From assembly GCA_002269645.1 (NCBI GenBank), contig NIVC01000826.1, forward strand, positions 41,237-105,236: a stretch of 64,000 bases of DNA, given 5' to 3'. A model generated the notes under the pieces. The model did not search any database. It had not been told where the DNA came from and worked only from the letters and a program-made list of their open reading frames with translations. Each line of letters opens with the position of its first letter. Within the stretch, counting starts at the first letter, position 1. Positions 22,047-58,111 of this stretch are shown here, in pieces. A program made the translations under genes and the position numbers. The stretch comes from Macrostomum lignano. Its lineage: Eukaryota.

Positions 22047-22188
22047 AAAAATGACAGGAAGAGGAGCATCCTGCACACCAAACGAAGTCATTTTGGATAA
22101 TTTTAATTCCTTGCTTTGGCAAACAGAAGATTTTGCATCAACTACACAGAGTTATTCGTGTTAGACGTAATTTTTGGTTTCACACCTG

Positions 22189-23231
22189 TCAGATAATGAG
22201 CATTTCGAACTCCATCAGCGAGTAGTAGAATCCGTAGTAGTATTTCCATATGATGCCGTGACCAAACGGACCACCGATGGCGTCAGTGAAGTTCTTGTAC
22301 ACCCCGTTCGGGTGCGTGCTGTAGCAGCCTTGGAACCACCAGCCCCCGGAATAGTTCTCAGCGCAGCTGCTTGAAGAGTCGTCGTGATCGGCGTCCATCG
22401 TGCTGAACTGGCTGCCGGCAGAGTAGGACAGGCTGTCGCCGATGCCGTCGCTGCCCGAGTAGCCCAGCACCTGCAGCCGGTAGTTGTCCGACTCGGGACC
22501 CACGGAGAAGCTGGAGTACTCGGCCCAGTGCTCAGAGTCGTTCCACGCCTTCATCAGGATCCTCAGCTTCCGAGGACCAGAAGCAGTGAGAGCGTGGAGA
22601 GAGTTCAGGCCTGGGTAGACGCGGACGTCATGGCGGTGTTTGTCATTGAAGTCCGAGTTGGAAAAGAAGCGAATGGAGCAGATCTGGGATGCACTCACCG
22701 ATCCAGTAGTTTCCGTCGGGTCCCTCGCCGAACTCGCTCTGGTACTGAGTCCAGTTGCGGTAAAAGTCCACTGAGCCGGACACCCTGTGCTGCACGGTGG
22801 TCCAGCAGTCACTGCCGGCTGTCTGCAAGGTGACACAACAGGTGTGTCAGCTTTTATGCTCTGCGTTAAAGCGTGGCTGTGATGCTGACAAGTCTTGCGG
22901 TATGACTCACCCACACTCGCTGAGCTCCCTTGTTCGCATTGCGGCACTTCCTGCAGTGGCTCAGGCCGAGTCGGCACCTGAAGAGAGCGCACAGGCCGGA
23001 GCTGGCGTTGAACGCGACCAGCTGCACAGCGGAGTCGCTGTTGGCATGCACCGCGCATTCAGAGTCGCTTCGGACAGGCAGCGACCTCACGGCCTCGTAG
23101 TCGGAGAGGCTCTCGAGACTCGACCACCACGGTCGTCCAGAGGAGAAGGCGGCAACGGCTTCGGTCACGTGATGCGGGACTGCAGCGAGCAGCAGCAGCA
23201 GAGCCACTTGACGAGCGGGTTGGAGCTGCAT
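22189..23231 (-). CDS. Secreted FReD-3, about 288 aa; exons 23231-22911, 22822-22699, 22610-22189
   Basis: Signal [19 protein letters not shown]. Exon 2 [37 protein letters not shown]. Exon 3 FSTMDADHD...[21 protein letters not shown]...[11 protein letters not shown]. Confidence 0.92.
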
Positions 23232-24022
23232 TTGATCTGAATATGGAATAGTGGGTGAAAGCCGTCGCCTCAGTGCGGGTTTCACCTGCTGGTTTTCAAC
23301 CTCATTATCGAAGAAAGAAGGCAGATGGGAGACAGCGAATGAAGAGGGGAAGGAGAAGGCGGAGGCACATCTCATGGCCAGGAGTGCTTAACAGACTCAC
23401 CAGTTAAGCTGACTCCTCTGTAATGTCTCCTAATTCGGAAAATTCAGTCCGCAGTCACACAGGAGGCAGGAGCTGCAAGCCAATTATGTAAGTCCCGAGT
23501 CAGAAATTTGCAACAGCTGTGGTTGCCATGACAATCAGGCAGCTCTAGCTTTCAACAGGGGATGCCTCTCTCAGAGGCGGTGGGGATGGCCTTGCAGCTG
23601 ACTGCAGCTCATTAATTTCTGGGTTTGAAGGCACTGGAGCCGGCTGGCTTGGATGGCGGAGGCGCAGCTGATGGCGGCAGAGGCCCACCTCCCTTCCTGC
23701 CGCACTGCGCAGGCGGCCTGTTGCAGCGCCGGCCATGATGCAGGCGTTACCTTGAAAACTGGAACCTGAATAAGAAGCCGCTTTTGTTTACCAATTGAGG
23801 TCTGCTTTTTTGCGACTCTTCTCTGACTAGTCTAAGATGCTCATAAAATTGTAATGAGACACTAGTTTAGCCTATTCAGCTGCCTTCCACTTCAGAAGGC
23901 CAAAAAAGGAAGGCCCCAGACGGAAGAAAGGAAAAAGGTAGCTACCAGGCCAGGTAGAGACCAGCCTAGCCATAAACACGGCAGAATCTGGTCTGGAGAG
24001 TGTACACAGATTCGATATTCTC

Positions 24023-24710
24023 TGCAGCTGGTAGCGTTGAACGACAGCTCCAGCCTGCGCGCTCACTTCAGGTGCTGCCTGGGCCGGAGCCACTGCAGGA
24101 AGTGCCGCAATGCGAGTGTGGGTAAGTCATTCTGTTAGACAAATTAAGCGTTACACCTGAAAAGCTGTTACCTCTGTCACCTTGCAGACAACCGCCAGTG
24201 ACTGCTGGACAACCGTGCAGCACAGGGTGTCCGGCTCAGTGGACTTTTACCGCAACTGGACTCAGTACCAGAGCGAGTTTGGCGAGGGACCCGACGGAAA
24301 CTACTGGATCGGTGAGTGCATCCCAGATCTGCTCCATTCGCTTCTTTTCCAACTCGGACTTCAATGACAAACACCGCCATGACGTCCGCATCTTCCCAGG
24401 CCTGAACTCTCTCCACGCTCTCACTGCTTCTGGTCCTCGGAAGCTGAGGATCCTGATGAAGGCGTGGAACGACTCTGAGCACTGGGCCGAGTACTCCAGC
24501 TTCTCCGTGGGTCCCGAGTCGGACAACTACCGGCTGAGCGTGTCCGGCTTCTCCGGCAGCGCCGGCATCGGCGACTGTTGTCTAGTCGTCAGCAGTGGCA
24601 TGCAGTTCAGTACGAAGGACGCCGATCACGACACCAACTCTGGGAGCTGCGTGAACACTCATTCTGGCGCCTGGTGGTTTGGCAGCTGCTTCGGCACTCA
24701 CCCGAACGGA
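24023..24710 (+). pseudogene. FReD-4 pseudogene, inverted relative to FReD-3; lacks the 5' part of exon 1 and the last ~30 codons
   Basis: Exon-1 remnant ...HCRKCRN, exon 2 at 24188-24311 and exon 3 from 24400. Homology stops abruptly after THPNG. Confidence 0.85.
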
Positions 24711-26243
24711 CATCACAGAGATCTGCTACCATAGGCTCAGGTCATTATTAGGAGTCTTAAACTGGCTCTCAATACTCGCTGAGGAAGATTGCGATGCTGC
24801 CTCTGAAACTGGCAATGAGCTGACTAAAATATTTTGTTGTAAACCAAAAAGACTAAGTGTGATTATGTTGTAGGGCTGCGGGGCTCTTGGCTTTCTGTCT
24901 AAGAATCTCACTGCTGCAACCAATTTGCTACAAGGTTATCTTTTCGCCTGTGGTTTAATCACAGCACTGCTACCAAAATCTGTTATGGGGAATTAATGGG
25001 ATTCTTGGAATTTCTGAAAGATATGCTAGTTTTATTACTAATAGGAGTAAGCCAATGGTTGCTCCTGGTGGCGTGAGTGTCCGAGCGGCAAGACACTGTC
25101 TATCTATATTTACTGGAATTAGTCCGAGTGAGGGCACGCGGTGGATCAGAGTTGCCTGGGATAAACGCACTAATGGGGAATTTCAATACCTAATGGGTAA
25201 TTTCAGTATCTAATGGGGCATGTCAATATCTAATGGGGAATGCTGACATGGGATACGAAATGGGCCTGATAGGGAAAGAGAATATCTAAGACTTGGGGTA
25301 AGTCGCTAGATATGCGCTACGACTGGGCGGGGGGAAAAGGGAGAGGGAGGGAGGCCTGACTGTACGCTTGACTGGGGAAAGGACCAAGGAATGGAGAACT
25401 CAGTTCTTTCAACGAAGGGGGGGATAGAGAGGAGGTGTTCACCGGGAGGGGAGAAACGGTCGGGGCTTCTAAGGAATATGGGGTTATGGGGGAAAGAAAG
25501 GAGGACTGAAGGCTGACTCAATTCTATTTTTAGAACAAACTGTTCATACTCCAGACTTAGCTAGGAGCAATCGCCAAAAGGAAGAGGCACCAGAAGGATG
25601 CAGAAAAGAAGTGTATTTGCGCGTATATATACTAATTTTACTAAGTATGGCGGACAATTTTAAACAAAAATATATAAAAGAATTTATTAGCAGCAAAGTT
25701 ACAGTATAAAACCAGGTATTTATTTACGTATACTTACTTCCTGATAATGCTAAAATTAATAATGACAAAAACAATGAATTTACGTAAAAAACGAGAAAAG
25801 CTAATGTATTTAGGCAACTTGGTTACTAGTAAGGCAAAAATGAACGACAAAAATATCAGACTTGGTAAAAAAAGAGTTTACAAAAATAGCACTGGCACAA
25901 TTACAAGTTAAACTTTTTTACTGACAATTTACATAATCATGGTTTCAAATGCACTTTGCATTCTACAATATTGGAGAGTACTTTTCCTGAGTTTAAATCT
26001 GAATTATCCTCTCATTGAGACGGCAGAGCAGCTTAGCGGCAAACGCGTCTGACTCTCACGGCAAAGCACAGAGGGTGTCATGCGATTCACATCAAGGAGG
26101 GCCAGCCCCCGAGGCTCAGAGAGTGCACATGCCTGATGATTAGAAAATCGGGGCCGCTGTGTGTGTGAGTGCGGAATGGGGCCTCAACGCTAGGTTTTGG
26201 ATGATGTCACTGAAGTCGCTTCACACAGGTGGTTATAGCTGCG

Positions 26244-26257
26244 GTCGCCATGGCAAC
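26244..26257. promoter_or_regulatory. RFX X-box-like motif GTCGCCATGGCAAC within a segment triplicated upstream of FReD genes (variants at 23522-23535 and 28709-28722)
   Basis: Matches the RFX consensus GTNRCC(N0-3)RGYAAC. The homologous segments at about 23.5 and 28.7 kb carry 1-2 mismatch versions. Confidence 0.45.
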
Positions 26258-26644
26258 CGGACAATGTAGCTTTCTACAGGGGATATCTCTCTCAGAGGCA
26301 GTGAGCCTTGAAACTGACTGCAGCTCATTGATATCAGAGCGGCTGCGTCTTGGAAGCCGAATCCAGCTGATGGTGGCAGAGCTGCTGCATTTGCTGCGAG
26401 CGGCACCATGCCCTCCCGCTAGACTTTGCATGCGAACAGTTGCCCTGGCCCGAAGCTGCAACTGCTGCCCACATCGGACTCGGGCTGCAGCGGCGGGAGG
26501 CTGTGCCAGGCCTCGCTGTTGTCGCTCTTTGGAGGCGTCTCTGCGACTGCGCCAGGTCCCCGAAAAACCGCTGGGAGCGGCGGGCGTTGGGGCCGGCGGA
26601 CTCGAGTGCCTTGATTTGGAATTTTATGCCAGCAAACAGGTGGG

Positions 26645-26830
26645 CTGAGATTGGATTGGGGTGAGATTGGATTAGGGTGAGATTGGATTGTGGTGGGATT
26701 GGATTGGGGTGAGATGCGGTTGGGTGAGATTGAATTGGGGTATTATTGGACTGGGGTGAGATTGAATTGATCGGATTGGTTGGGGTTCGATTACATCCGG
26801 ATTGGGGTGGGATTAGAATCGTGTTGTGGA
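26645..26830 (+). repeat. Degenerate GATTGG/GGGTGA short-period repeat
   Basis: Repeated GATTGGATTGGGGTGA-like units. Confidence 0.75.
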
Positions 26831-27453
26831 TCAAGCTTGCAGGCTGATAGCAGCGGTTCTGCTTTATCTGAAACCAAGTGCACTTTTATTAGCAAAAGCC
26901 GGGACCTCTGAAGCAGACGAATATACCGGTACTGTGCATGAAAACGTAAAAAATACAAATTAAGCTTAAGCTTCAAATAAATAAGTTTGAAACTCAATGA
27001 TTACTTCTGTGACTAAGGCACCTCTGTGAGCAGATGTGACGAAATTAAACTTCTTAGTTTGATGCACGCAATAAAATTGCTCACGGGCAAAATCTTGAAG
27101 CCTCGGGCTGAGAGCGCCTGAGTGGAAAGAGAATTGGAACTTTTCGGTGAGTAGCTCTCTGTTTCCTGACAAGCCGATGCTTTCCCAAAATTTCGAATGC
27201 CATGCCGTGCAGTTTTTATTAAGGAAATGAAAGTCACAGTCCATCGCCACTGTATGCAGAGTGAATTTTTACCGTGTATTTCCACCATCAATTCCGAGCG
27301 CTTCATCTAACAGATTTCTTTGTGTTGCAATAAAATATTTCAGTTTGGATAAAATTTCGGAAATCTCAAAGTTGCTTCAAAACTGATTGAGCGCTCGATA
27401 TTGCAAGTTGCAGCAGCCATCTCCTATGCTCGTTTCCTATCACGCTGGTGCTA

Positions 27454-28502
27454 TTACAGAAGCAGCATCTCGATCTCCTTCAGTGAGTAGTAGAAACCAA
27501 AAGTTTTCCTCCAAATGACTCCCTTTGCAAAAGCACCTCCAATGGCAGCAGATGAGTCTTTGTACTCTCCGTTCGGGTGGGCGCAGTGACAGCTCCTAAA
27601 CCACCAGGCACCTTTATGAGTTGTTGCGCAGTTGTCAGTGCTGGTGTCGTGATCGGCGTCCTTCGTGCTGAACTGCATGCCGTTGTTATTGTCGAGGCAG
27701 TCGCCGATGCCGGCGCTGCCGGAGAAGCCGGACACGCTCAGCCGGTAGTTGTCCGACTCGGGACCCACGGAGAAGCTGGAGTACTCAGCCCAGTGCTCAG
27801 AGTCGTTCCACGCCTTCATCAGGATCCTCAGCTTCCGAGGCCCAGAAGCAGTGAGAGCGTGGAGAGAGTTCAGGCCTGGGAAGATGCGGACGTCATGGCG
27901 GTGTTTGTCATTGAAGTCCGAGTTGGAAAAGGAAGCGAATGGAGCAGATCTGGGATGCACTCACCGATCCAGTAGTTTCCGTCGGGTCCCTCGCCGAACT
28001 CGCTCTGGTACTGAGTCCAGTTGCGGTAAAAGTCCACTGAGCCGGACACCCTGTGCTGCACGGTGGTCCAGCAGTCACTGCCGGCTGTCTGCAAGGTGAC
28101 ACACAGGTGTGTCAGCTTTTCTACTCTGTGTTAAAAGGCTAGCGTGATGCTGACATATCCAACAGAGTGACTCACCCACAGTCGCTGAGCTCCCTTGTTC
28201 GCATTTCGGCACTTCCTGCAGTGGCTCAGGCCCAGGCGACACCTGAAGTGAGCGCACTGACCGGAGCTGGCGTTGAACGCCACCAGCTGCACAGCGGAGT
28301 CGCTGTTGGCAGGGACAATGCATTCGGGCTCATTCTGGACCGAGTGCGACCTCACGGCCTCGTAGTCGGAGAGGCTCTCGAGACTCGACCACCACAGTCG
28401 TCCAGAAGAGAAGGCGGCAGCGGCTTCGGTTACGTGACGTGGGACTGCAGCGAGCAGCAGCAGCAGCAGCAGAGCCACTTGACGACCGGGTTGGAGCTGC
28501 AT
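27454..28502 (-). CDS. Secreted FReD-5, about 290 aa; exons 28502-28176, 28088-27965, 27875-27454
   Basis: Same exon structure as FReD-3. P-domain [35 protein letters not shown]...[11 protein letters not shown]. Confidence 0.92.
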
Positions 28503-29449
28503 TTGCTCTGAATGTGGAGTAGTGGGTGAAAGCTGTCACCTTACTGCGGATTTCGCCTGCTGGTGAAATGCCCCGTGCTCAACAGACTCACCAGTTTAGC
28601 TGACTTTTCTGTAATTCCTTTAAATAAAAAAATTCAGTACGCACTCACAGCAGGCAGACGCTGCAAGCCAATATGAAAGCCCCGAGTCAAAAATATGCAA
28701 CAGCTGAGATCGCCATGGCAACCAGGCAGCTCTAGCTTTCAACAGAGGCTGTGAGGATGGTCTTGCAGCTGACTGCAGCTCATTAATTTCTGTGCCAGAA
28801 GGCGCTGGAGCCGGCCGGTTTGAATGGCGGAGGCGCAGCTGATGAAGGCAGGTGGCAGAGCCGCTTCTTTTGCAGCTCAGCTTATTGCGGACCCCCCCCC
28901 ACCTTCCTTTCTGCCGGACGGCGCATGCGGGCTGTGAGAACGCAGCTCAGGTAATACAATTGTACCTTGAAAACTGGAACCAACTTTTAGGCTTGAGTGC
29001 CCATTTTGCGACTGTTCTCGTCTTCCCATGCTGAAGTAGTCTAAGATGGTCATGAAATGGTAATGAGCCACCAGTTTAGCCTGCTGTGAGTCTTACTTAC
29101 ATTCAACTGCCTCCTGTCTCCACACTTCAGTGATAGAAAAAAGGAAGGCCCCATACGGAAGAAAAGGAGAAAGAAAGGTAGCTACGGGCTTGGCCTACAG
29201 ACCGGGCTGGCCCTACAAGACACGAAAGAAGCTGGTCTGGAGAATGCAAACAGAAGAGAAGCAAAGTTTGAGGATGGGAAAAGCGTATTTAGAGCTTTCT
29301 GGATTGGACGTTCTACTGCTCAATTATATCCCCATCAACGAACCGAGTTATGGAGCTACCGTAAGTAGTAAGATTTGGTCGAGAGAGCTAATCACAGACA
29401 GTGAAGTGAGAGCTCTCATCCGCCATTCGATAGCCCGTATTAAGCTGAG

Positions 29450-29935
29450 ATGCAGCTCCAACTCGCTAGTCAAGCCGCTTTGCTGCTGCTCGCGGCTATA
29501 CGGCAACAAGTGACCCCACTGTGCAGCTGGTGACGTTCCAGCTCCGGCCTGCGCGCTCACTTCAGGTGTCGCCTGGGCCTGAGCCACTGCAGGAAGTGCC
29601 GCAATGCGAACAAGGGAGCTCAGCGAGTGTGGGTGATTCACTCAGTCAGATGTGTCAGCATCACAGCCACGCTTTAACGCAGAACAGAAAAGCTGGCACA
29701 CCTGTTGTGTCACCTTGCAGACAGCCCACAGTGACTGCTGGACCACCGTGCAGCACAGGGTGTCCGGCTCAGTGGACTTTTACCGCATCTGTACTTAGTA
29801 CAGGACTGAGAGCTCCAGCTTTTCTGTGGGTCTGTGAGTCCGACAAATACCGGCTGACCGTGCCCGGCTTCTCTTTCAGCGCCGGCACCGGCGACTGTCT
29901 TTCTGTTAACAATGATATGCAGTTCAGTGCGAACT
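29450..29935 (+). pseudogene. FReD-6 pseudogene, head-to-head with FReD-5; internal deletions in exon 1 and across exon 2/exon 3
   Basis: ATG CAG CTC CAA at 29450 is homologous to the FReD-3/5 start. Exon-1 3' part is present. Exon 2 is fused out of frame to mid-exon 3 (GAGTCCGACAAATACCGGCTG). Confidence 0.8.
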
Positions 29936-30074
29936 GCAGGTGTTCTCAGTACAGAAGCCAACGAGAATAATTAGCAAAGGAACGATTCTCTATCGCCCCA
30001 ATACTAACAGCCTCTCTCATGAGCTTGTAGCGTACGCCACCACTCAAGCATTTTGCTCCCTAATAGTCTCTCCC

Positions 30075-30849
30075 CAAGGACTACTCAAGTAACATATATA
30101 TAGGACGCAACACTCGAAATCTATGGTAAATGTAATGAAGGCCACTTTTCGCCGAAAAATACACTACAGAGATAGGAGGTTTTAATTTTTCAGCACAAAA
30201 ATTGTTATTGCTTTTGATAAGAGGCAGATCCAGTGCTCATCTTTTGATATGTTGTGCCTTTCTTATTGTTCTATCGATATTCATAAAGCTTTTTGTTCAG
30301 AAATAGTTTTAAAGGCAGGTTTCACTGGAATAATACACTACGGAGATAAGGAATTTAACGATTCTCAACACTAAAACAGTGATTGGGTCTCTTAACAGTG
30401 TCAGAGAAAGTTCTCTGACATGGAAAAATGGTCTTATTGGAAAAAACGTTTAAAATAATGACAAGGTCAATTTAACATGAAAAAATCGATTAATGCGTCG
30501 TTAGAGCAGCATGTGAGGCACAAAATAGTGTGAATAGAACTTTCTCTGACACTGTTAAGAGACCCAGACACTGTTTTAGTGTTGAAAATCGTGAAATTTC
30601 CTATCTCCGTAGTGTATTTTTCAGGCGAAACCTGCCTTTAAAACGAAAAGCTTTATGAATATCGATAGAGCAATAAGAAAGGCACAGCATATCAAAAGAT
30701 GAGCACTGGATCTGCCTCCTATCAAAAGCAATAACAATTTTTGTGCTGAAAAAAACCTATCTCTGTAGTGTATTTTTCGGCGAAAAGTTGCCTTCAAAAC
30801 ATTTACCATAGATTTCGAGTGTTGCGTCCTTCTACTTTAGTTGTCCCTG
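30075..30849. mobile_element. Foldback/MITE-like element with about 310-bp inverted arms; related fragments near 17990-18110, 20340-20470 and 21340-21410
   Basis: Left GGACGCAACACTCGAAATCTATGGTAAATG...AGAAAGTTCT is the reverse complement of right AGAACTTTCT...CATTTACCATAGATTTCGAGTGTTGCGTCC. Flanks CTCTCCC / TTCTCCC may be a degenerate TSD. Confidence 0.8.
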
Positions 30850-31295
30850 TTCTCCCTGTGTGTTTCTAGAGCTTTCATTCCAATAATTAAGCCCTGTGCT
30901 CGACACTTAGAGCCTTAGATAGAACAAAGTTCTGATCAAACTCGTAGGCCACTTGTCTCCAGACACTTTCTCCCTGGGCGGATACTTAGCACCTTATACA
31001 TACTTAGTATAATTATACAAATCAAAATTGATTCTCTTTCCAAAGAGCTTAAAACAGTTATATAAGGTTTTGGCTGCGAGACAGATGTAACGCCTGACTT
31101 CAAGCCAATCGAAGATTTTGTAGCTCGGCTGCTGCATTAAGTGATATAGTGACTAAAGGTCATAAATAAAGCTGAGACAGTATGTGTGATTTGTCCTCTG
31201 TGACATGTACCACAGTTTCAATCGTACTTTTTCGTACCTGTGTTTATTTTTTCATGCCAAACCAGTGAAAATTGTGATAGAACTACTGAACTCAC

Positions 31296-31692
31296 CTGCA
31301 CGAAGGTAGACCTGCCGGTACACAGAGATTCGCCAGAACCCCCCGCAGACTTGGGCAGAGTTGCCGGCGCAGTTCATGTTGCAGTCGCTGTCGGCAGCCT
31401 GGCCGAGGGTGCCATACGAGTCTCTGCAGAAGCATTGAGTTGAGTGCTGAATGCCAAAGTACTCGAAGTTTCCATAGGCGCAGATCTCGCTGCACAGTTC
31501 CAAGGTCATGTTGCCGAGGAGGACGAATGACTCGGACACCGAGTAGGGCCCGATGGTGGACCTGCCGTCGAGTCCGGCCAGGTCTCGAGTTTCCCCGTCC
31601 ACGAAGCAGCCCACCGGGCCGAATTCGGCGCCCAGCGAGCTGCCAAAAGCGACGCAGCAGCACAGAAGCGGCAGAATTGATGAGGCCTGCAT
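31296..31692 (-). CDS. Secreted single WSC-domain protein WSC-1 (main exon; possible short terminal exon near 31197-31160)
   Basis: Signal MQASSILPLLCCCVAFG. WSC pattern VGCFVD...MTLELCSEIC...YFGIQHSTQCFC...CNMNCAGNSAQVCGGFWRISVY. Donor GCAG|GTGAGT at 31295. Confidence 0.85.
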
Positions 31693-34600: not shown

Positions 34601-35307
34601 CGGGATGCAAACTTGAGGTGACGCACAAGCAGTGTTATTGAGCGGCGCACCAGCCGCGGCGAGTTTTGCTGCACCGATAGAACTTCTTCGATTTTTTTAA
34701 ATTTTAAATTAAAATTTTTACATACCAACCAAGAATAAGTTAATAAAACTTGTCTTGTAGCGACAACAATTTTTTCATTAATTTTTTTAATTGAATTCCT
34801 CCATTGAGTCGGAGAGTTACAAGCAGTTTTTGCTATCACAACAAAATTCCTAAAGTTAAAAAGAAAACTTTTTCTCGAAGACTATAAAATTAAATGCTCG
34901 ATCGAGATCGACTATTCGAAAGCTGAGTGTCAGATAGCTTAGTTATACGTATGGCATTGGCCATTTTATAGTTCACTCAGTTAGATTATTATTATTTGTT
35001 ATTTGAGTTTTAGTTCTAGTGCACCCTTGCCACCCCAGCGTCGGGGGCTGGTGTTATCTAATTCACTTTCTTCTCTCTCTTTGTTGGCCAGCGCGGCACC
35101 CACCCCTAATCTCAATCTAGTAATTTATGCTGGCTAAGTGAATTCAATTTAATAAATACTGCGACACCGCGCATAAGATTTCGCGTGTGTTTTTCCACTT
35201 CCAATTTGCAAATACTCGTCTCGTTTGCGCACTCGGCTCATAATTTCACACTGAGCGATCTCTCAAAAATTGAACCTTTGCTACTGAAAAGGCGCACAAC
35301 CTGCAAC

Positions 35308-35813
35308 ATGTCTCTGGCTCGACTGGCTCTACACCTAGCTGTGCTGAGTGTCGCTCTGGCTGCCTTCTGCGGCGCGGCAACCATAAAACGGAGCACCGGT
35401 AATAGTATTCTTTCTTACTGTGTCCTGACTCCCGTGCCGTAGTATTCTTTGCTGTGTCCTGACTCCCGTGCCGTGATTTCTCAAACGTTCGATTGTTCGA
35501 TTTTACAGCCCCAAAACGAATCGGCTGTTTTGCGGACAGAATTGAAAGAGATCTTGACGGATACGAACTGAGATCAGCGGGTATACATGTAAAAAACTGC
35601 TTGAGACTCTGCACAATAAAAAAGTTCCGGTATGCAGGGATGCAGGCGAGGGACTGGTGTCATTGTGGCAACTCATATGGTCGCTATGGCCAAGTTGCCG
35701 ACTCCGAGTGCAAACTAAAGTGTTCTGGAAACATCTGGAAGGACAACTACTGGGTTTCTGGGGGGACTTGCGGAGGACATTGGAGAAACGAAGTCTACAG
35801 TACAGGCCTATGA
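35308..35813 (+). CDS. Secreted cationic single WSC-domain protein WSC-2, about 131 aa; exons 35308-35398, 35509-35813
   Basis: Signal MSLARLALHLAVLSVALAAFCGA. WSC pattern IGCFAD...CLRLC...YAGMQARDWCHCGNSYG...CKLKCSGN...CGGHWRNEVY. Phase-1 GT-AG intron. Confidence 0.88.
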
Positions 35814-35869
35814 GCTGTGAGCCAAGTTGATGCTGCGCTGCTTTGTGGCAACAGTCCATCTCTGCCTGC

Positions 35870-36147
35870 CTGCATGTCAGTCTGTCTGCCATCAATACTA
35901 GCTTGCATGTCAGTCTGTCTGCCATCAATACTAGCTTGCATGTCAGTCTGTCTGCCATCAATACTAGCTTGCATGTCAGTCTGTCTGCCATCAATACTAG
36001 CTTGCATGTCAGTCTGTCTGCCATCAATACTAGCTTGCATGTCAGTCTGTCTGCCATCAATACTAGCTTGCATGTCAGTCTGTCTGCCATCAATACTAGC
36101 TTGCATGTCAGTCTGTCTGCCATCAATACTAGCTTGCATGTCAGTCT
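35870..36147 (+). repeat. 33-bp minisatellite (GCATGTCAGTCTGTCTGCCATCAATACTAGCTT), about 8 copies
   Basis: Tandem copies ending at the AGTCT target duplication of the Gypsy element. Confidence 0.95.
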
Positions 36148-39100
36148 TGTTAAGTTATTGACAAGAGTCAGTGTGTAAGGCTAGTCAAAAACTCTTATGG
36201 CTCCAACTGGCCCAGCCCCGACTTATATATTTAACTAAGCGAGCGATGTACATTGTAGAACGTACACAAAGCCAGTGCGCATAAATAAAGCATTTTAGCA
36301 TTATTGAATGGATGGATTGAGCTCTCAGTAAAACCAAATCACCCGATACCGATACACAATGCAATACACAACATCTCCTTTACGAAAGTTATTTGTTCGA
36401 AAACGATCTAAATAAAACAGCATTGGTGCGAACTTATATCTCTGAAAAAGGTATTAAAAACGAAACATTGAACAGATACTGTATGGGCATGGCAGGATAA
36501 AAAAACAAAAATCATATTTGTCATTAGGTTAGTAAGTCATGCAATCCGAGATATTAGATGAACACAGAAAGTATTACAATATTATGGCCGAATGCTAAAA
36601 GCTGGTTTTTTTAGATGCTTAAAAAGTTTAAGTTAGCTCAAGAATAACTGCTACATCAAGTGACAGTCACCAGCAACTTACAGTACTCAGGCTGCCTGGT
36701 AATACTCAGGAGTCTTGACAGCTCGGCCACGCATGGTCCGATAAGGCCCATCTCGCTGGAGGCCGGAGGCCGGCTGCACGGAGGCCGGCTGCACGGAGGC
36801 CGGCTGCACGGAGGCCGGCTGCACGGAGGCCGGCTGACAATCTCCCTGCTCGTCCTCTTCGCTGCTCTGTAGGAATTCACCGACTGTCACACCAATCTTC
36901 CGAGGCCTGATGAAGCGGCGGTTCCGTCTGAGCAACTGTCCAGTCTCAGTTCGAACCCAGTACGACCTTGGGGAGTTCTCGCACTCGCTATCAATCTCAG
37001 CTGCCACCCACTCGCGACGTCCGCGTTGTAACCACACCAGATCACCAAATGCTAGCTTCTGCAACGGTCGAGCTCCGCGATTGTACAGCTGCGCTGCTCT
37101 AATGCGCTCTTTTTGAAAAGCCTCAATGCAGGAGTGAAGATGAATTTCCTTTGGCCGCAAGTCCTTGACAGTCGCTGGCAGGTCACATCGAAGCTTACGG
37201 CCGAAAGCCATCTCCGCCGGGCTTGGAAAGCCGCTGCCGACCGGAGTGTTGCGGTAGTGAAGCAGTGCCAACTCCAGACTTTGGCCTGTCTCGGAGCATT
37301 TCTTCAACATGTTTTTAGCTGTCTGTACGTAGCGCTCAGCTCTCCCGTTCGACTGCGGGTACGCTGGACTCGAGGTTCGGTGCTCCACCTTGAATTCAGC
37401 CATTGTCTGTCGAAACTCGCGAGCAGAAAACTGCGGGCCTCCATCACTGACTAGCTTCTCTGGCACTCCAAAGCTTTGAAAATGATCCCGTATCACATTC
37501 GCCACAGCCAATCTTGTGGTTGATCTCATCCGTGTGACACTCATCCAGCGGCTGTAGGAGTCAACGTACACCAAGTAGGATCCACCAGTGAACTCAAATA
37601 GATCAGTCGAACAGACTTGGAACGGAAAATCCGGCATATTCACAGACATCAGCGTTTCTTTGGACTGAGTCCTCATATTGCGCTGGCATGACTCGCATTC
37701 ACTAACGACCTGCTCTACGCAGTTCCGCATTCCTGGCCAGTAGAAATAGTCCTTGGCCTTCAAGTCCATTTTCACGATGCCAGGGTGCCCCGCATGTAGA
37801 ATTTTGAGCACAGATTTCCGGGCGTGGCCTTCAGGCATAGAAGACCGGAGGCATACGTCAAGTCATTTCGGATATCCCAAAAAGGCTTCAGATCATCTGA
37901 CAACTTCGACCGACGCTCTGGCCAACCCTCCTGGATGACAGTTCGCAACCGCTCACTAGTCGCATCTTCTGCTGTCGCAGTCTTTATCATCTGCAAGATT
38001 TCTCGATCACCACTAAAGCAGCGTTCCACCGATAAAACTTGGTCGTCAAGCGCAGTCTCAAGCTGAATAGTGAGAAGATCAGCTGCACCGTGAGCTCGAC
38101 TTAAAGTGTCGGCTACATAAAGGTCTTTGCCTTGCGTGTACTTCACGCGGATGTCATAAGGCTGCAACTGAAGCAGGAGTCGCTGAATTCGAGGAGTAGT
38201 GTCGCACAAAGCCTTTTTAAAGATCGATTCAAGTGGCTTGTGATCGCTTTGCACTTGCACCGTACGACCCCAGATATAACGATGGAATTTTTTTGCAACC
38301 ATAGACGATGGCCAAAAGCTCTTTCTCAATCTGCGCGTACGCGCGCTGAGCACTTGTCATAGCCGAGGACGCGTATTCGACGGGGCGATCCTCTTGAAGC
38401 AGCACTGCGCCGATGCCACTCTTGCTTGCGTCAACTGAGACTGTGACAGGCTTGTTGGTGTCAAACGTGGCTAACACTCGGCTTGAGCATAGTTCCGTGA
38501 CGATCTCATCATACGCTTGGTCGTGTTGATCCACCCAGCTCCATATAACCTCTTTCTTCAGCAGGTGTCTCAGTGGCTCTGCTGTGGCAGACAAGTGTGG
38601 GCAGAATCTGGCCAAGTACGTGACGCAGCCAAGAAACCGCCTCAACTGTTCTTTCTTTGCTGTCACGCCTTCAAGAGAATCGGGTCTTGCCATCTCTTTG
38701 ATCGCTTTAACCTTCTGGGGATCAGCCCTCAGTCCATCTGGTCCGAGAATGTCCCCTAAATAGTTTAGCTCTGGGACTCCAACTTTCACCTTGCTGGGAT
38801 TCAGCGTCACGTTTGCACGCTTGCACTGCTCCATTAGCTGGCGCACCGCCGTATCGTGCTCCTCGATCGTGCGTCCCCACACAATAATATCATCGAAGAA
38901 GTTTTTAGCGTTTTCCACATGGCTGGTAACATTTTTTTCCATGCGTTTCTGAAACACTTCTGGGATCGAAGATAGGCCATACGGCACACGCTTCCACCTG
39001 TATCGACCAAACGGAGTGTGGAAAGTGGTAAGGAACGAACTCTTCTCATCTAGCTTAAGCTGGTGAAAGCTCTCGTTTGTGTTAAATGTGCTAAATACAG

Positions 39101-40980
39101 CGGCTCCAGCAGTTGCCATGCGGACCTCCTCAGCTGTTGGGATTGGGTGATACTCGCGCACAATGAACTGATTCAGATATGTCGGATCCAGGCAAAGACG
39201 CATCGAGCCGTCTCTCTTCCAAACAATGGTGACGTTTGACACCCACTGAGTTGGTTCATCAACCTGGACAATGGTTCCTTTTTTTTCGAGACGCTCTAGC
39301 TCGCACTTCAGTGGCTGATAGGCAGCAAATGGGACCTTCCGTGGTGGCTGGACTTTTGGGACGGCATTTTCAGTCAACTGAATGCTGTACTGCTGTTTCA
39401 TGCACCCAACACCCTTGAAAACGGTTGGATAGTCTGTAAAAAGTTGACTCGAAGTAATCTGAGACTTCTCTACTTTGGTTAGGCTGAGTTGGCTCTTGTC
39501 TATGGCAAAAAGCTTCTTGATGAGTTTTAGCTCATGGAGCGCTGACCTCCAGCCTATTATCGGGGTGGAGTTTTCTCCGACAACTACGAACTGCAGCCTT
39601 TTGTTTTTCTGGCATGGTGAAGACACAGTCAGATATGTCAGTCCAACAACATCTAGCTGCTGTCCGTTGTACGTAGTGAGCATCCATGTCGTGGGCTCGA
39701 TTTTTGCCGATGGAGAAAAACGGGTTAGGCTGCGCAGTGGAATTACATTTACATCTGCTCCCGTGTCAACTTTAAACTGAAGGGCTTTACCCGAATCTTC
39801 TGTTGACAGACTCACCATCATTGTTGAGTGGCCATGCAGAGGCTCAGCTTCCGGTGTCTCAACTGTCATTACTGTCGCTGGGTCTGGTTCTTGATCAAAG
39901 CCTGGCTTGTCCTGTTGATTTTTTTCTTGGAGTTCGTTGACCCTCTTCGAAGACCGGCACGCTGACGCAAAGTGATTCAGTCGTCCACAGCTGCTGCACT
40001 TCTTTCCGTAGGCCGGGCACTTCCTCCGCTCGTGTTGCATAGAGCAGTAGCCACAGCTAGGCCTTGAGGTTGGACCTGAGGATCTAGCTGGTGCCTTGGT
40101 TCGGCCTTGGAGAGCGTCAACAGACACAGCAGGGGGTGCTCGGCTGCCGTGAGCTATGGCCAGAGAAATCGCCTGTCGCTTCGACGTCTCTGAAGCCCTA
40201 CCCATTTGAATAGCGCGGTTGAGATTCAGGTTTTTCTCTCTCAGAAGTCTCTCCTTCAGCGCCGGATCGCTGACTCCTATAACAATCTGGTCGCGGATGA
40301 CGCTATCGCTGACTGTCTCGCCGTTGGCCGGTGTTTCGTAATTGCACCTAGTAACGAGCTGTCGAAGGGAGGCTACGAACTGATCGAAGTCCTCCGACTC
40401 AGCCTGAGTTCTGGTTCTCAACAGGTAGCGATCGAAAGTTTCGTTGCAAAGCGGCTCGCAGTAGTCCTTGAATTGCTTGATTACGTTGTCGTATGTTTTC
40501 ACCTCCTCTGTGGGAAATGTTGAGTACACTTCTTGGCCTTCCGGTCCAAGTGCAGTTAGCAGTATTGCGATCTTAACCTCTTCGCTTTTTTCTGTCTTTT
40601 TTGTAGCCTTCATATAAAAGTCCATCGCCTTGCTCCATCTTCTCCAATTGTCTGCTCGATTGGTGTCGAACACCATCGGCTCTGGAGGCCTCAGTCCTTC
40701 CATTGCTTTGGTAGCTAGTTGAAAATAGAAAGTACTTTTATGCTTGCGACGCCATGTTAAGTTATTGACAAGAGTCAGTGTGTAAGGCTAGTCAAAAACT
40801 CTTATGGCTCCAACTGGCCCAGCCCCGACTTATATATTTAACTAAGCGAGCGATGTACATTGTAGAACGTACACAAAGCCAGTGCGCATAAATAAAACAT
40901 TTTAGCATTATTGAATGGATGGATTGAGCTCTCAGTAAAACCAAATCACCCGATACCGATACACAATGCAATACACAACA
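36148..40980 (-). mobile_element. Full-length Ty3/Gypsy LTR retrotransposon (Mag-like), 4833 bp; LTRs 36148-36373 and 40755-40980
   Basis: The 226-bp LTRs are TG...CA and I see one mismatch between them. 5-bp TSD AGTCT. PBS TGGCGTCGCAAGCA at 40754-40741 and PPT AAAGGAGA. Domain order is gag-PR-RT-RH-IN. Confidence 0.97.
36687..40703 (-). pseudogene. Gag-Pol polyprotein of the Gypsy element, interrupted by two frameshifts (about 38290 and about 37840)
   Basis: CCHC knuckle CSSCGRLNHFASAC, protease VDTGADV, RT FFDD, RNase H VDASKSGIGAVL and YAQIEKELLA, integrase HAGH...CESC with D(STDLF), D(VSDGG), E(AERYV). Extra base in the homopolymer at 38288-38294 and a short deletion before MPEGHARKSV. 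Confidence 0.93.
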
Positions 40981-41787
40981 AGTCTGAATGCCTGCCTAAA
41001 TTTCGTCTATTTCTTATCATCATTTTCAATACACGGCCCCAGATACTTTTGGAGTTGTTCTGCCCTTAGCATGACAATTTGATAATATTAATCCACAATT
41101 TTAGATTGAAGAAGATGCCATCAAACGCGCTTGGAAAGGAAAACTGCCATGCAGCTGTTTGACTGAAACTCATTGACTTAAACGGATATTATCATTGCCT
41201 TAGTGACGCATGAATAAAACTGATTGCACTTAAAATGATGACGAACAAAAAGATTTTTCTTAGCCTTTTTCTCTGCACGTTCGGGAATTTATTTGGAGAT
41301 ACAGCACTGGCTGTTCTGGGAGTGGGTCTGAAAGTTCGGGGTCTCTGATCAAGCCATTGATAAATAGAGGTTGTGCCATAGACAAACATCAATGCGGCAG
41401 GAAAATGGGCACTCTCAGGGTGAGAAGACTTAAATAAAATTGAAATATGAAGCATATTTTCGTGATTTTGAATTAAAAGGGCGTACGTCGAGCAAAAGAA
41501 ACTTTTTGTTCTGGTAGGGATGAAGGCGGCGGTTGCCGTAGGCAAATGTCTCCCAGAACAGGTGGGAGTAGCCAGTCCAGACAGGGAACTATGTCTGGAC
41601 CTTTTCTTCTTGTCGATTGGAGGCTGAAGGCACAAGCTATAGAAATGAAAGGAAAGAAGAGGGAAAGAGATTTGAGCGAGAATCTGTTGCGTCGATAGCT
41701 GTATTTATGAGTTCTGCCCAAACGTACAGTAAACATACAAGTGATAGGACTGGGGGATCATTAAAGTGTGAGATGTGTGAGAAGTGT

Positions 41788-41818
41788 GTTAGTTAGTTAG
41801 TTAGTCAGTTAGTTAGTG

Positions 41819-41859
<41 letters not shown>

Positions 41860-41981
41860 GTTTGTTTGTTTGTTTGTTTGTTTGTTAGTTAGTTAGTTAG
41901 TTAGTCAGTCAGTTAGTTAGTTAGTTAGTTAGTTAGTCAGTTAGTTAGTTAGTTAGCTAGTTAGTTAGTTAGTTAGTTAAC

Positions 41982-42049
<68 letters not shown>

Positions 42050-42128
42050 CAGTCAGTCAGTTAGTTTGTTAGTTTGTTAGTTTGTTAGTTAGTTAATTAG
42101 TTAGTTAGTCAGTTAGTTAGTTAGTTAA

Positions 42129-42187
<59 letters not shown>

Positions 42188-42278
42188 GTTTGTTTGTTAG
42201 TTTGTTAGTTAGTTAGTTAGTTAGTTTGTTTGTTTGTTTGTTTGTTTGTTAGTTAGTTAGTTAGTTAGTTAGTCAGTC

Positions 42279-42313
<35 letters not shown>

Positions 42314-42408
42314 CAGTTAGTTAGTTAGTTAGTTAGTCAGTCAGTCAGTTAGTTTGTTAGTTTGTTAGTTAGTTAGTTAGTTAGTTAGTCAGTTAGTTAG
42401 TTAGTTAA

Positions 42409-42483
<75 letters not shown>

Positions 42484-42523
42484 ACTAGTTAGTTAGTTAG
42501 TTAGTTAGTTAGTTTGTTTGTTT

Positions 42524-42587
<64 letters not shown>

Positions 42588-42793
42588 GTTTGTTTGTTTG
42601 TTAGTTAGTTAGTTAGTTAGTCAGTCAGTCAGTTAGTTAGTTAGTTAGTCAGTTAGTTAGTTAGTTAGTTAGTCAGTCAGTCAGTCAGTTAGTTTGTTAG
42701 TTTGTTAGTTTGTTAGTTTGTTAGTTAGTTAGATAGTTAGTTAGTTAACTAGTTAGTTAGTTAGTTAACTAGTTAGTTAGTTAGTTAGTTAAC

Positions 42794-42845
<52 letters not shown>

Positions 42846-42926
42846 CAGTCAGTAAGTTAGTTAGTTAGTTAGTTAGTTAGTCAGTCAGTAAGTTAGTTAG
42901 TTAGTTAGTTAGTTAGTCAGTCAGTA

Positions 42927-42981
<55 letters not shown>

Positions 42982-43026
42982 CAGTAAGTAAGTTAGTTAG
43001 TTAGTTAGTTAGTCAGTCAGTCAGTA

Positions 43027-43060
<34 letters not shown>

Positions 43061-43084
43061 CTAGTTAGTTAGTTAGTTAGCTAG
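41788..43084 (+). repeat. About 1.3-kb (TTAG)n microsatellite with TTTG/TCAG/TAAC variants
   Basis: Read directly. Confidence 0.98.
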
Positions 43085-43595
43085 TGGCGACTCGAACACA
43101 ATACGAGCTAGTCGTTTGAAAATTACCGAGGCATCCGTGAATACTGTTTCTTCTCAATTCATAAAATTTCTGATACAGGTATGCGTACGAGTAGTTGGTA
43201 GTCAGCTGTCGAATGTTATTTGTGTTTTACTGGTCTGTATTTTTCAGTTTAGTTAATAGTTGTCGCCAATTAAATGCCTTCATCCCACCTACGTACGGTG
43301 TTTTTTTATTTGTTTTTATAACTCTATCCATGGTTATCATTCTAAATGAGGACAGGAACTTCTCTTGCTGTTGTATTCTGCCCCCCACGTCAGGCAAATC
43401 TCAATTAATTTTGATATTATTTCTTCTCGCAACTCTCCCAATAATGCTAATCACACGAATGCAGCAGCGTACCTCTGAAATATGCGGAGAATTAGATGCT
43501 TGAGTGGAAAATTCTCTCGACATTAGAAGGCATTACAGGAGTGACTGACAAACTAAGCGCTAAGTTTAGTATCCCTAATTAACTGCCTTCATCTA

Positions 43596-43613
43596 ACTCA
43601 CTAACTAACAAAC

Positions 43614-43657
<44 letters not shown>

Positions 43658-43660
43658 CAA
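43596..43660 (+). repeat. (CTAA)n microsatellite, inverted relative to the (TTAG)n array
   Basis: Read directly. It abuts the FReD-7 exon 2 remnant. Confidence 0.9.
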
Positions 43661-44285
43661 CTGCCAGCAGTGACTGCTGGACCACCGTGCAGCACAGGGT
43701 GTCCGGCTCAGTGGACTTTTACCGCAATTGGACTCAGTACCAGAGCGAGTTCGGTGAGGGACCCGACGGAAACTACTGGATCGGTGAGCGGTGAATCCAA
43801 TATCTGCCTCATTCGCTTCCTTTTCGGTTGAGCCTGCTACGAGCTGTGCCCGATTTGCAGGTCTGAACTCGCTTCACGAGCTCACGAGGTCTAAAAGCCG
43901 AAAAGTGAGGTTTTTGATCACTGATTGGGACCATTTGGAGACCTGGGCTGAGTACTCCAGCTTCTCAGTCGGTCCTGAGTCTGATAAGTATCGGCTGAGC
44001 GTGTCTGGCTTCTCAACCGGCAGTGCCAATGTGGGCGACAGCTTCTCGCACGGCAACGGCATGCAGTTCAACACCAAAGACAACGACATTTCCGGTAGCA
44101 ACTGCGCTCAGGAATTCTGGAGCCTGGTGGTTCGCCGCCTGCTTTCTCGCCCATCCGAACGGACAGTACAAGAACTTCTCTAAGGCCATCGGAGGTCCGT
44201 ACGCTCAGGGCATCATGTGGATTCATTTTTTGGCGTTCACAACTCCCTGAAAGAGTTCGAGATGATGATCTTTTTGACTGACTAA
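43661..44285 (+). pseudogene. FReD-7, orphan exons 2 (about 43661-43783) and 3 (43861-44285); no exon 1 or acceptor, two frameshifts
   Basis: Exon 2 is essentially identical to FReD-3/5. Exon 3 GLNSLHELTRSKSRKVRF...NCAQEF/GAWWFAACFLAHPNG...SLKEFEMMIFLTD* needs frame corrections near 44118 and 44226-44231. Confidence 0.8.

Positions 44286-49986: not shown

Positions 49987-58111
<8,125 letters not shown>

Follow-up and report, generated by a model that had tools for sequence, protein, structure and literature searches.

The fibrinogen-related domain (FReD) genes in the window, the whole stretch of 64,000 nucleotides of Macrostomum lignano DNA that was analysed, are mosaics of segments with different histories. 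The explanation that we favour, with a probability of roughly three in four, is that the copies became evolutionary mosaics through repeated non-allelic gene conversion, which would have overwritten a central block while old lineages of the P-subdomain were retained. The cluster is a tandem and inverted array of genes specific to the M. lignano lineage, in which F1, F2, F3 and F5 are intact within the window and F4, F6 and F7 have decayed; satellites are abundant throughout. The genes and the segments discussed below are:

7281..8564, minus strand: FReD-1 (F1), intact, in-frame three-exon model of 277 aa, a sister subfamily outside 22189-44285
11484..12692, minus strand: FReD-2 (F2), intact, 278 aa
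22189..23231, minus strand: FReD-3 (F3), intact, 288 aa, three exons (23231-22911, 22822-22699, 22610-22189) with introns of 88 bp each
22474..22855, minus strand: F3 homogenised tract, from ~33 bp before the end of intron 1 through exon 2 and intron 2 to ...NYRL in exon 3
22189..22473, minus strand: F3 lineage-specific P-subdomain segment with the Ca2+ loop, Cys loop and C-terminal tail
23384..24010, no strand: F3-F4 intergenic spacer, homologue of the F5-F6 spacer 28575-29254 by self-BLAST
24019..24809, plus strand: FReD-4 (F4), pseudogene, head-to-head with F3
about 24175-24575, plus strand: F4 homogenised tract, 6-7 differences from F3 or F5
27454..28502, minus strand: FReD-5 (F5), intact, in-frame model of 290 aa, three exons (28502-28176, 28088-27965, 27875-27454)
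27739-28120 (versus F3) and 27700-28101 (versus F4), minus strand: F5 homogenised tract
29451..29931, plus strand: FReD-6 (F6), decayed fragment, head-to-head with F5
43660..44285, plus strand: FReD-7 (F7), pseudogene of the P0017 lineage
about 43667-43787, plus strand: F7 homogenised part, exon 2 only, 2 differences from F3 in 121 bp

The spliced F3 coding sequence is 867 nt and in frame, with GT-AG introns, and residues 1-290 of the UniRef M. lignano protein P0001, which also includes part of F3, are 100% identical to F5. The F3-F4 and F5-F6 spacers are only 68.6% identical (self-BLAST), which sets the baseline divergence of the duplicated head-to-head unit. F4 has a 15-bp deletion and a Cys>Arg replacement in exon 1, lacks an ATG and a signal peptide, and runs into a stop at ~24733 after a deletion following HPNG. 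F6 has an ATG, large internal deletions, a Cys>Arg replacement and an in-frame stop; the 3' part of its exon 1 and its intron 1 are 82-95% identical to F3/F5. F7 lacks exon 1, with (TAAC)n directly abutting exon 2, and compared with P0017 it carries two frameshifts, of which one falls within its CAQEF-GAWWF loop, and a 6-bp deletion. The first-pass annotation had treated FReD-3, -4, -5 and -7 as paralogues with a near-identical scaffold; they do share the tract, but two of these four (F4 and F7) are pseudogenes. The decayed copies keep open P-subdomain segments beside intact genes, in inverted orientation and with an identical tract competent for recombination.

Each gene encodes a predicted secreted protein in which a signal peptide is followed by a PAN/apple-like N-module with Cys residues and then by a FReD that lacks the A-subdomain. 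Profile and fold both identify the domain as fibrinogen-related: residues 111-287 of F3 match positions 40-218 of 221 in Pfam PF00147 (Fibrinogen_C, E=5.1e-46), and Foldseek superposes the AF2 model (pLDDT 80) on L-ficolin with an rmsd of 1.4 Å over 176 columns, a TM (target) of 0.75 and 42-43% identity. The A-subdomain (about 45 residues with a disulfide) is absent, as profile positions 1-39 are unmatched, the PDB alignments begin at ficolin-2 chain residue 44-45, and structural superposition at low rmsd extends over no more than the 176 columns. Residues 1-110 have no Pfam match and no Gly-X-Y repeats, so that there is no collagen-like region, and no Ig match that would indicate an IgSF domain. 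The N-module model (pLDDT 71) contains strands and a helix, and its top 40 Foldseek matches are almost all PAN/apple/MANEC, but weak (E 0.03-0.2, TM ~0.5, none <0.001), with no PAN/apple profile matching in Pfam at E<=1. Among 1.84 billion representative proteins, the combination of a PAN-like module with an A-less FReD occurs in M. lignano only.

F3, F4 and F5 share a tract of ~380 bp at 98-100% identity, which runs from the end of intron 1 through exon 2 and intron 2 into the first 137 bp of exon 3, and the near-identity of exon 2 across F3, F4, F5 and F7 reported by the first-pass annotation is confirmed at 0.94-1.00 of the DNA. Intron 2, which it described as an 88-bp sequence common to F3, F4 and F5, is near-identical in the three (0.98-1.00, versus 0.62-0.64 against F7), but only F3 and F4 have 88 bp, and F5 has 89 bp. 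Exon 3 up to ...NYRL is 0.99-1.00 identical among F3, F4 and F5 and 0.70 against F7. The abrupt divergence claimed beyond this shared part is real: F3 falls to 0.64-0.77 against F4 and F5, while F4 and F5 stay identical for 39 bp more (to GIGD) and then drop to 0.77. The C-terminal tails of F3, F5 and F7 are equidistant (about 0.67-0.71), and the 3' UTR and flank of F3 and F5 have no alignable similarity. All six of the quoted Cys-loop peptides are found where they had been placed.

Between F3 and F5, which are 79% identical overall, sliding identity is 0.94-1.00 over 22846-22497, 0.54-0.74 downstream, and 0.70-0.92 upstream. Across the tract they have 6 differences in 382 bp and an identical run of 234 bp; dS is 0.035 there (dN 0), compared with 0.22 for exon 1 and 1.13 for the P part. 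The best 370-column window has 4 differences, a clustering reached in none of 10,000 permutations, and for the remaining pairs the identity clustering was reached in none of 5,000. A patchwork is nested within the tract, with F3 equal to F5 in exon 2, F4 equal to F5 at the end of intron 2, and F3 equal to F4 in the first part of exon 3 (exon 3a). GC3 enrichment across the converted tracts is inconsistent. Polishing of a repeat-rich assembly could raise an identity of 97-98% to 100%.

A second M. lignano locus in assembly GCA_002269645.1 (L003) served as the third sequence in a three-way site test. The F3 segment 22189..22473 is 67% identical to F5 and 94.9% identical to L003:10082-10359; exon 2 of L003 is 97% identical to the shared block, and its scaffold otherwise differs from that of F3. 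Upstream of 22474 (intron 2 and exon 3a), 65 informative sites unite F3 with F5 versus one that unites F3 with L003, and downstream (3' flank included) 135 unite F3 with L003 versus 11 with F5. F3 is thus a recombinant: it resembles F5 on the 5' side of 22474 and L003 on the 3' side, 3' flank included, and trees are incongruent across this position. Intron and synonymous-site identity, clustering, and incongruence across breakpoints together identify ectopic gene conversion or concerted evolution. The proposal that gene conversion (or recombination) homogenises the scaffold therefore stands on the intron and synonymous identity, the tracts in pseudogenes, the permutations, and the L003 incongruence. 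The sharp step in divergence marks a breakpoint of conversion or recombination where old lineages meet, and no fast-evolving zone begins there, because dS exceeds dN beyond it, the 3' flanks are unalignable, and the F3-type P part is 95% preserved in L003. F1 and F2 share a 482-bp tract at 99.2% identity in the 5' flank and exon 1 (8265-8746 and 12393-12874) and a second one in the last ~135 bp of the coding sequence, and their dS is 0.014 in exon 1, 0.39-0.91 in the middle, and 0.098 in the tail. The constant/variable split is not a fixed family-wide design, because these tracts lie elsewhere and the F1/F2 scaffold has diverged.

About 22 M. lignano paralogues, taken from UniRef gene models (fused or truncated in several cases, and potentially homeologues or alleles of a neopolyploid genome in some), have the constant block flanked by a variable PAN/apple-like N-module and variable P-subdomain loops. 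In the 13 full-length units, the mean pairwise aa distance is 0.45 in the variable N region and 0.38 in the variable P region, versus 0.03 in exon 2 and 0.02 in exon 3a; N and P distances show little correlation (Mantel r=0.27, p=0.09), and a unit's nearest neighbours are not the same in the two regions. Our literature search found no paper on the M. lignano FReD family, which represents a known type of phenomenon, an invertebrate FReD family that has expanded and undergoes concerted evolution.

The acetyl-binding S1 pocket consists of two Asp Ca2+ ligands, a Cys-Cys loop, a His after the second Cys, and aromatic residues. We take the corresponding positions to be those suggested by work on TL5A, FIBCD1 and fibrinogen-gamma, combined with the ficolin-2 alignment. 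Judged by sequence, the putative pocket of F5 would comprise D225, D227, C233-C246, H247, H237, F266-A267, and F278. F3 has Tyr at position 247, and the residue after the second Cys is His, Phe, Tyr or Ser among paralogues; the statement that only F5 keeps His is correct within the window but not family-wide, as Cys-His is kept in 12 of 23 units. Neither the Ca ligands nor the two Cys vary in the family alignment used for pocket entropy, and both Ca-ligand Asp are lost in F1 and F2, whose altered DxDxD had been recognised from the start. Entropy is 2.08 bits at pocket-homologous positions versus 0.97 bits in the rest of the P region (p=0.0018). The products are probably Ca2+-dependent lectin-like recognition proteins of differing specificity.

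The concentration of variability at pocket-homologous positions, together with a Cys loop that is unique in nearly every unit (22 distinct loops in 23 units), would also be expected if recent duplicates had been driven apart in the P-subdomain by positive diversifying selection or targeted hypermutation. This also fits the young pair F3/L003, whose P part has 7 replacements versus about 4.5 synonymous changes (omega 0.51), with several of these in the Cys loop. We nevertheless regard such selection as unlikely. Variable-part dS is 0.8-1.5 (saturated) and exceeds dN, at a dN/dS of about 0.2-0.5 (loops 0.25-0.43; 0.18-0.43 across the variable part; F3/F5 dS 1.13, dN 0.33, omega 0.29), and omega above 1, sought in every pair and segment with the low power of saturated dS and few DNA copies, was not found (all 0.18-0.52). 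Further points against this reading are the unalignable F3/F5 3' UTR and flank, the equidistant F3, F5 and F7 tails, and the survival of the F3-type P part at 95% in L003 on a different scaffold. The variable part is old, not fast-evolving, so the claim of a diversifying, hypervariable binding pocket is not borne out; patchy gene conversion is what the pattern shows. From the idea of a constant/variable lectin repertoire, the homogenised central block beside pocket-concentrated variability remains, and active diversification does not.

That the tract merely looks identical because assembly or polishing collapsed the reads of many paralogues is very improbable. The M. lignano genome is repeat-rich, neopolyploid and hard to assemble, and the window is rich in satellites, but the tracts retain copy-specific differences in a nested pattern, their flanks are unique, the block recurs in about 22 gene models and at 97% in exon 2 of L003 (GCA_002269645.1), and such an artefact would not produce a step from 30% to 0% divergence. 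Very strong purifying selection on the protein without conversion, which the structurally conserved B-subdomain and a tract dN of 0 might suggest, can be set aside almost entirely: selection alone is refuted by the identity of intron 2 and of synonymous sites, the tract also occurs in the pseudogenes F4 and F7, trees are incongruent across 22474, and the F1/F2, L003, P0017, P0022 and P0025 lineages tolerate 15-30% replacement in the same region. Hardly more credible is somatic diversification in which F4, F6 and F7 would act as cassettes donating to expressed genes, after the pattern of chicken Ig or the one reported in snail FREPs: decayed, inverted copies with open P segments do adjoin intact genes across a shared tract, and the diversity of Biomphalaria glabrata FREPs has been ascribed to gene conversion and point mutation (PMC12074976), but the evidence here is entirely germline (assembled sequence) and the conversion seen falls within the scaffold and not in the P loops.

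Under repeated germline conversion, non-allelic gene conversion, possibly with crossing-over, would overwrite exon 2, intron 2 and the first third of exon 3 time and again, with the direct neighbours F3/F5, the inverted pairs F3/F4 and F5/F6, and more distant relatives as candidate partners. Most of exon 1 would also be overwritten, to a lesser degree. Two regions would escape and keep old lineage-specific sequence: a short N-module patch and the final two thirds of exon 3, where the Ca2+ loop, Cys loop and S1-pocket loops are encoded. The outcome would be a germline family in which the B-subdomain scaffold is nearly constant and the P-subdomain exists in many versions, with differences that would favour positions homologous to the acetyl-group pocket known from ficolins, tachylectin-5A and FIBCD1. 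Selection probably helps to shield the variable islands from conversion. A more far-reaching version, which we consider doubtful, has the central tract as a recombination hub reassorting two variable modules (the N-module patch and the P pocket), with F4, F6 and F7 as reservoirs and selection shielding both islands, to yield a combinatorial lectin repertoire of a free-living flatworm that would be germline and conceivably somatic as well.

Snail FREPs combine a full FReD with one or two IgSF domains at the N-terminus, and their reported diversification lies in the IgSF part and is claimed to be somatic. Like the FREPs of B. glabrata, the M. lignano genes form an expanded invertebrate FReD family of predicted secreted, presumably lectin-like proteins. 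The first-pass annotation was right that the architecture differs: there is no Ig match, the N-module is PAN/apple-like instead of IgSF, and the A-subdomain is missing; moreover, conversion here homogenises, not diversifies, and is known from germline sequence. Ficolins, tachylectin-5A and FIBCD1 have in common with the M. lignano proteins the B and P fold, the DxD Ca2+ ligands, the Cys-Cys loop and the HPNG/NLNG motif, and F5 appears to retain Cys-His and aromatics at pocket positions; unlike them, the M. lignano proteins lack the A-subdomain and any collagen-like or coiled-coil region, their pocket residues vary between paralogues, and F1/F2 lack the Ca ligands. Lineage-specific tandem expansion is shared with the FReD families of mosquitoes and of oysters, whose members are reportedly secreted proteins with a FReD only or a FReD and a short N-terminus; to our knowledge, neither a near-identical central block across many paralogues nor a PAN-like N-module has been described in them. 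The conversion resembles that in MHC, KIR, and between palindrome arms, with patchy ectopic tracts of about 100-400 bp, inverted and direct partners, participating pseudogenes, and a homogenised framework adjoining old divergent binding regions, although the protein family and phylum are different and balancing or diversifying selection is not demonstrated on the M. lignano islands.

Innate recognition molecules of flatworms are poorly known, and because M. lignano is tractable for transgenesis, expression, knock-down and binding tests are feasible. The locus provides a coordinate-level example of ectopic conversion that holds a scaffold constant while old binding-site lineages persist, and a "constant scaffold, hypervariable pocket" in protein alignments can mean age differences made by conversion, not fast evolution.

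Searching the window with the exons of one copy (tblastn) returned seven fibrinogen-related-domain (FReD) gene copies, F1 to F7, of which F1 and F2 are a sister subfamily of the others. All six Cys-loop peptides quoted in the first-pass annotation were recovered by six-frame searches.

FReD gene copies in the window (positions, strand, state)
F1: 8564-7281, minus strand, intact
F2: 12692-11484, minus strand, intact
F3: 23231-22189, minus strand, intact
F4: ~24019-24809, plus strand, decayed
F5: 28502-27454, minus strand, intact
F6: ~29451-29931, plus strand, decayed
F7: 43660-44285, plus strand, decayed

Gene models of F1, F2, F3, and F5 have three exons and GT-AG introns, are in frame, and encode 277-290 aa. 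In F4 only the 3' third of exon 1 is left, so both ATG and signal peptide are missing; this remnant carries a Cys-to-Arg replacement and a 15-bp deletion, and a deletion 3' of HPNG creates a stop. F6 retains the ATG and has an in-frame stop and large internal deletions. F7 has no exon 1, its exon 2 being directly adjoined by a (TAAC)n array, and differs from its intact relative P0017 (a UniRef M. lignano protein) by two frameshifts and a 6-bp deletion; one frameshift falls within the loop previously given as CAQEF-GAWWF. F3 and F4 are arranged head-to-head, as are F5 and F6, and the two pairs constitute a duplicated unit whose intergenic spacers are just 68.6% identical. Close protein matches are all M. 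lignano "Fibrinogen C-terminal domain-containing" proteins, and the family is unreliably annotated in public databases: the UniRef protein P0001, which may not confirm the F5 model independently, joins F5, at 100% identity, to a portion of F3, and several models among P0001, P0002, P0003, P0008, and P0020 are fused neighbouring FReD genes or fragments.

Exon 2 is, as first read, near-identical in F3, F4, F5, and F7 (0.94-1.00 DNA identity). F3, F4, and F5 also have in common intron 2 (0.98-1.00, versus 0.62-0.64 against F7) and exon 3a, the part of exon 3 up to NYRL (0.99-1.00, versus 0.70 against F7). The abrupt divergence described earlier begins 3' of NYRL, where F3 drops to 0.64-0.77 against F4 and F5; F4 equals F5 as far as GIGD, then falls to 0.77, and 3' of the stop codons the copies do not align (0.28-0.39). 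The tract comprises the end of intron 1, exon 2, intron 2, and exon 3a, and in F3 it has 6 differences from F5 over 382 bp, a near-identity that assembly polishing could exaggerate. Such clustering of identity is far above chance expectation: no permutation reached it, in 10,000 for F3/F5 or in 5,000 each for F1/F2, F3/F4, F4/F5, F3/F7, and F5/F7. Between F3 and F5, dS rises from 0.035 in the tract to 0.22 in exon 1 and 1.13 downstream of NYRL.

Homogenised tracts and an island of old sequence
F3 tract relative to F5: 22855-22474, 382 bp
Exon-1 old-sequence island: 23046-23096 in F3 and 28311-28361 in F5, with homogenised sequence on both sides
F1/F2 promoter and exon 1 tract: 8265-8746 in F1 and 12393-12874 in F2, 482 bp, 99.2% identity

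Because the identity of the tract includes intron and synonymous sites, it argues for conversion or recombination and against constraint or hypermutation. The tract is also present in the pseudogenes F4 and F7, where its flanks are decayed or old. The few differences inside it form a nested patchwork (F3 agrees with F5 in exon 2 and with F4 in exon 3a, and F4 agrees with F5 where intron 2 ends and over the 39 bp after exon 3a), which implies several short events. GC-biased conversion was set aside, its signature being inconsistent (GC3 of 0.82 in the tract, 0.67 in the variable part of F5, and 0.81 in that of F3), and the idea that the identical intron hosts a conserved non-coding RNA was dropped, an Rfam search of window positions 20000-45000 having given no matches.

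The decisive test was a three-way comparison with a second M. lignano locus, L003 (NIVC01000616.1), with a partial copy of the F3 lineage, probably a pseudogene, followed by the same 29-bp satellite as in the window. This satellite lies directly 3' of F3 (21446-22047, ~21 copies, 96% matches) and is expanded to several kb in L003 (10528-15259). Among the loci tried only L003 was useful, L001 and L002 being single, distant, and uninformative family members. In intron 2 and exon 3a, 65 informative sites unite F3 with F5 and 1 unites it with L003; from 22473 through the stop codon and 3' flank, 135 unite F3 with L003 and 11 with F5. Accordingly, the identity of F3 to L003 versus F5 is 0.47 versus 0.98 in intron 2, 0.949 versus 0.67 in the P part (the P-subdomain segment after NYRL, with Ca2+ loop, Cys loop, and tail), and 0.85 versus 0.45 in the 3' flank. 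Since its affinities swap between F5 and L003 on either side of ~22474, F3 is a recombinant. Together with the intron and synonymous identity, the pseudogene tracts, and the patchwork, this test upholds the proposal that conversion (or recombination) homogenised the scaffold. The P-subdomain and 3' flank of F3 are those of an old lineage, little changed since the F3/L003 split (dS 0.089), the scaffold was overwritten from an F5-like donor, and the abrupt divergence in F3 is a breakpoint.

The same mosaic logic applies within exon 1, where a 54-bp patch (codons 52-70) has a dS of 0.80 between F3 and F5 and both flanks have 0.07-0.25. Across the family, this island is also where the N-module varies most, and it lies in a strand-helix region of the model. 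In the sister pair the 5' flank and exon 1 are homogenised, as are the last ~135 bp of the coding sequence; exon 2 and exon 3a have diverged (dS 0.39-0.60). Because the F1/F2 tracts sit elsewhere and the scaffold has diverged, conversion is patchy and does not follow a division into scaffold and pocket. Even so, divergence is greatest in the Ca-loop and Cys-loop segment in both subfamilies. Intron 1 is unrelated between F1 and F2, intron 2 of both contains (TCTG)n, and the stretch separating the genes includes a 92-bp tandem array (9292-10293).

Across 13 full-length family members, mean pairwise amino-acid distance is 0.03 for exon 2 and 0.02 for exon 3a, against 0.45 for the variable N part, 0.38 for the variable P part, and 0.13 for the remainder of exon 1; most core members are known solely as UniRef proteins, whose models are partly fused or truncated, and, M. 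lignano being neopolyploid, some "paralogues" may be homeologues or alleles. The 87-aa block of exon 2 and exon 3a is identical in 7 of 22 members, the others differing by few residues, a count that replaces a candidate figure of >15 paralogues with a 100% identical block. P0017 and F7 have exon 2 alone in common with the block, P0022, P0023, and P0028 have exon 2 and the end of exon 3a, and in P0025 and L003 exon 3a is divergent. Distances in the N part hardly correlate with those in the P part (Mantel r=0.27, p=0.09), and the two parts also give different nearest neighbours, a discordance consistent with reassortment across the central block.

Pocket positions were fixed a priori by homology, anchored on the ficolin-2 alignment, using residues that we take to be the ligand site (TL5A Tyr210/Arg218/His220/Tyr236/Ala237/Tyr248 and fibrinogen-gamma Gln329). 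Over 23 family members their mean entropy is 2.08 bits versus 0.97 bits at the other P-region positions (one-sided Mann-Whitney p=0.0018). The 23 members have 22 different Cys loops; little or no variation is seen in the Ca-ligand Asp pair, the two Cys, GAWWF, or the Asn of HPNG. That only F5 keeps the His is right within the window and fails family-wide, Cys-His being found in 12/23. The description of the pocket as "DIVERSIFYING" found no signal of positive selection, because synonymous divergence equals or exceeds replacement divergence: regional dN/dS (Nei-Gojobori) was <1 in all comparisons made (F3/F5, F4/F5, F3/F4, F1/F2, F3/L003), and these ratios were rejected as evidence for diversifying selection. 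For the loops from NYRL to HPNG, omega was 0.42 (F3/F5), 0.34 (F4/F5), and 0.43 (F3/F4); the tail gave 0.18, the exon-1 patch 0.35, and the young F3/L003 pair 0.51. The power of the test is low because dS is saturated and just four or five DNA copies enter it, and selection may act at specific sites.

The sole Pfam match of the protein is Fibrinogen_C (residues 111-287, profile positions 40-218 of 221), PDB sequence alignments begin at ficolin-2 chain residue 44-45, and the AlphaFold2 model (pLDDT 80) can be overlaid on L-ficolin with an rmsd of 1.4 A across 176 columns, covering ~75% of the target; the protein therefore has no FReD A-subdomain. Reading exon 1 as a divergent A-subdomain was ruled out, structural alignments that include it having an rmsd >8 A. 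Exon 1 encodes what, by eye, looks like a signal peptide, and a Cys-containing N-module of ~80 aa, for which a Pfam search gave no match. Modelled alone (pLDDT 71), the best structural matches of this module are almost all PAN/apple/MANEC modules, and weak (E 0.03-0.2, TM ~0.5). A profile search of 1.84 billion representative proteins gave 20 matches: the ten new ones that were named comprise nine FReD proteins of M. lignano and a low-complexity match from a scorpion; of the other ten, nine are M. lignano proteins from the earlier search and one is weak.

The window contains several other elements. An LTR retrotransposon (36148-40980) lies between F6 and F7, with RT, RNase H, and integrase domains in minus-strand ORFs; its 226-bp LTRs (36148-36373 and 40755-40980) are 99.6% identical, which suggests a young insertion. 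Also between F6 and F7 is a 1.3-kb (GTTA)n microsatellite (41788-43085), 5' of F7; the (TAAC)n run (43590-43655) adjoins F7 exon 2 precisely at the expected splice acceptor, and a related array occurs at 53669-53909. A tandem array of 23 copies of a 51-bp unit (18196-19389, 99% matches) can be read as a 400-aa ORF with an ATG and weak Pfam matches below cut-offs, and is probably a satellite, not a gene. A short dispersed repeat (17975-18141, 20337-20509, and 30102-30830) may be a MITE or foldback-like element; it forms an inverted pair just 3' of F6 (30102-30414 versus 30830-30536, 89%) and apparently also occurs 5' of the L003 F3-like copy in both orientations (~8890-9060, ~9400-9700). Flanking ORFs at 4841-5695 (minus), 45120-45665 (plus), and 51782-52717 (plus), with Pfam matches to ASC (amiloride-sensitive sodium channel), PDZ, and cyclic-nucleotide phosphodiesterase, appear unrelated to the cluster.

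Expanded FReD families, and gene conversion within them, are already known, and an oyster paper reportedly deals with immune-gene expansion. A literature search for M. lignano FReDs found no paper on this family. FREP diversity in Biomphalaria has been ascribed to gene conversion and point mutation (PMC12074976). Unlike ficolins, the M. lignano family has no collagen region, and unlike snail-type FREPs it has no IgSF domain; its FReD has no A-subdomain, and its N-module is, as modelled, PAN-like. Function, expression, and selection of the cluster are what we infer, and its products are probably Ca2+-dependent lectin-like proteins. Ectopic conversion, recurring between direct and inverted repeats that lie close together, would homogenise any sequence similar enough for pairing; our best estimate is that the diverged P part and N patch would be barriers to conversion or be shielded by selection. 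The germline would thereby carry a repertoire of secreted lectin-like proteins that have their scaffold in common and differ in their pockets.
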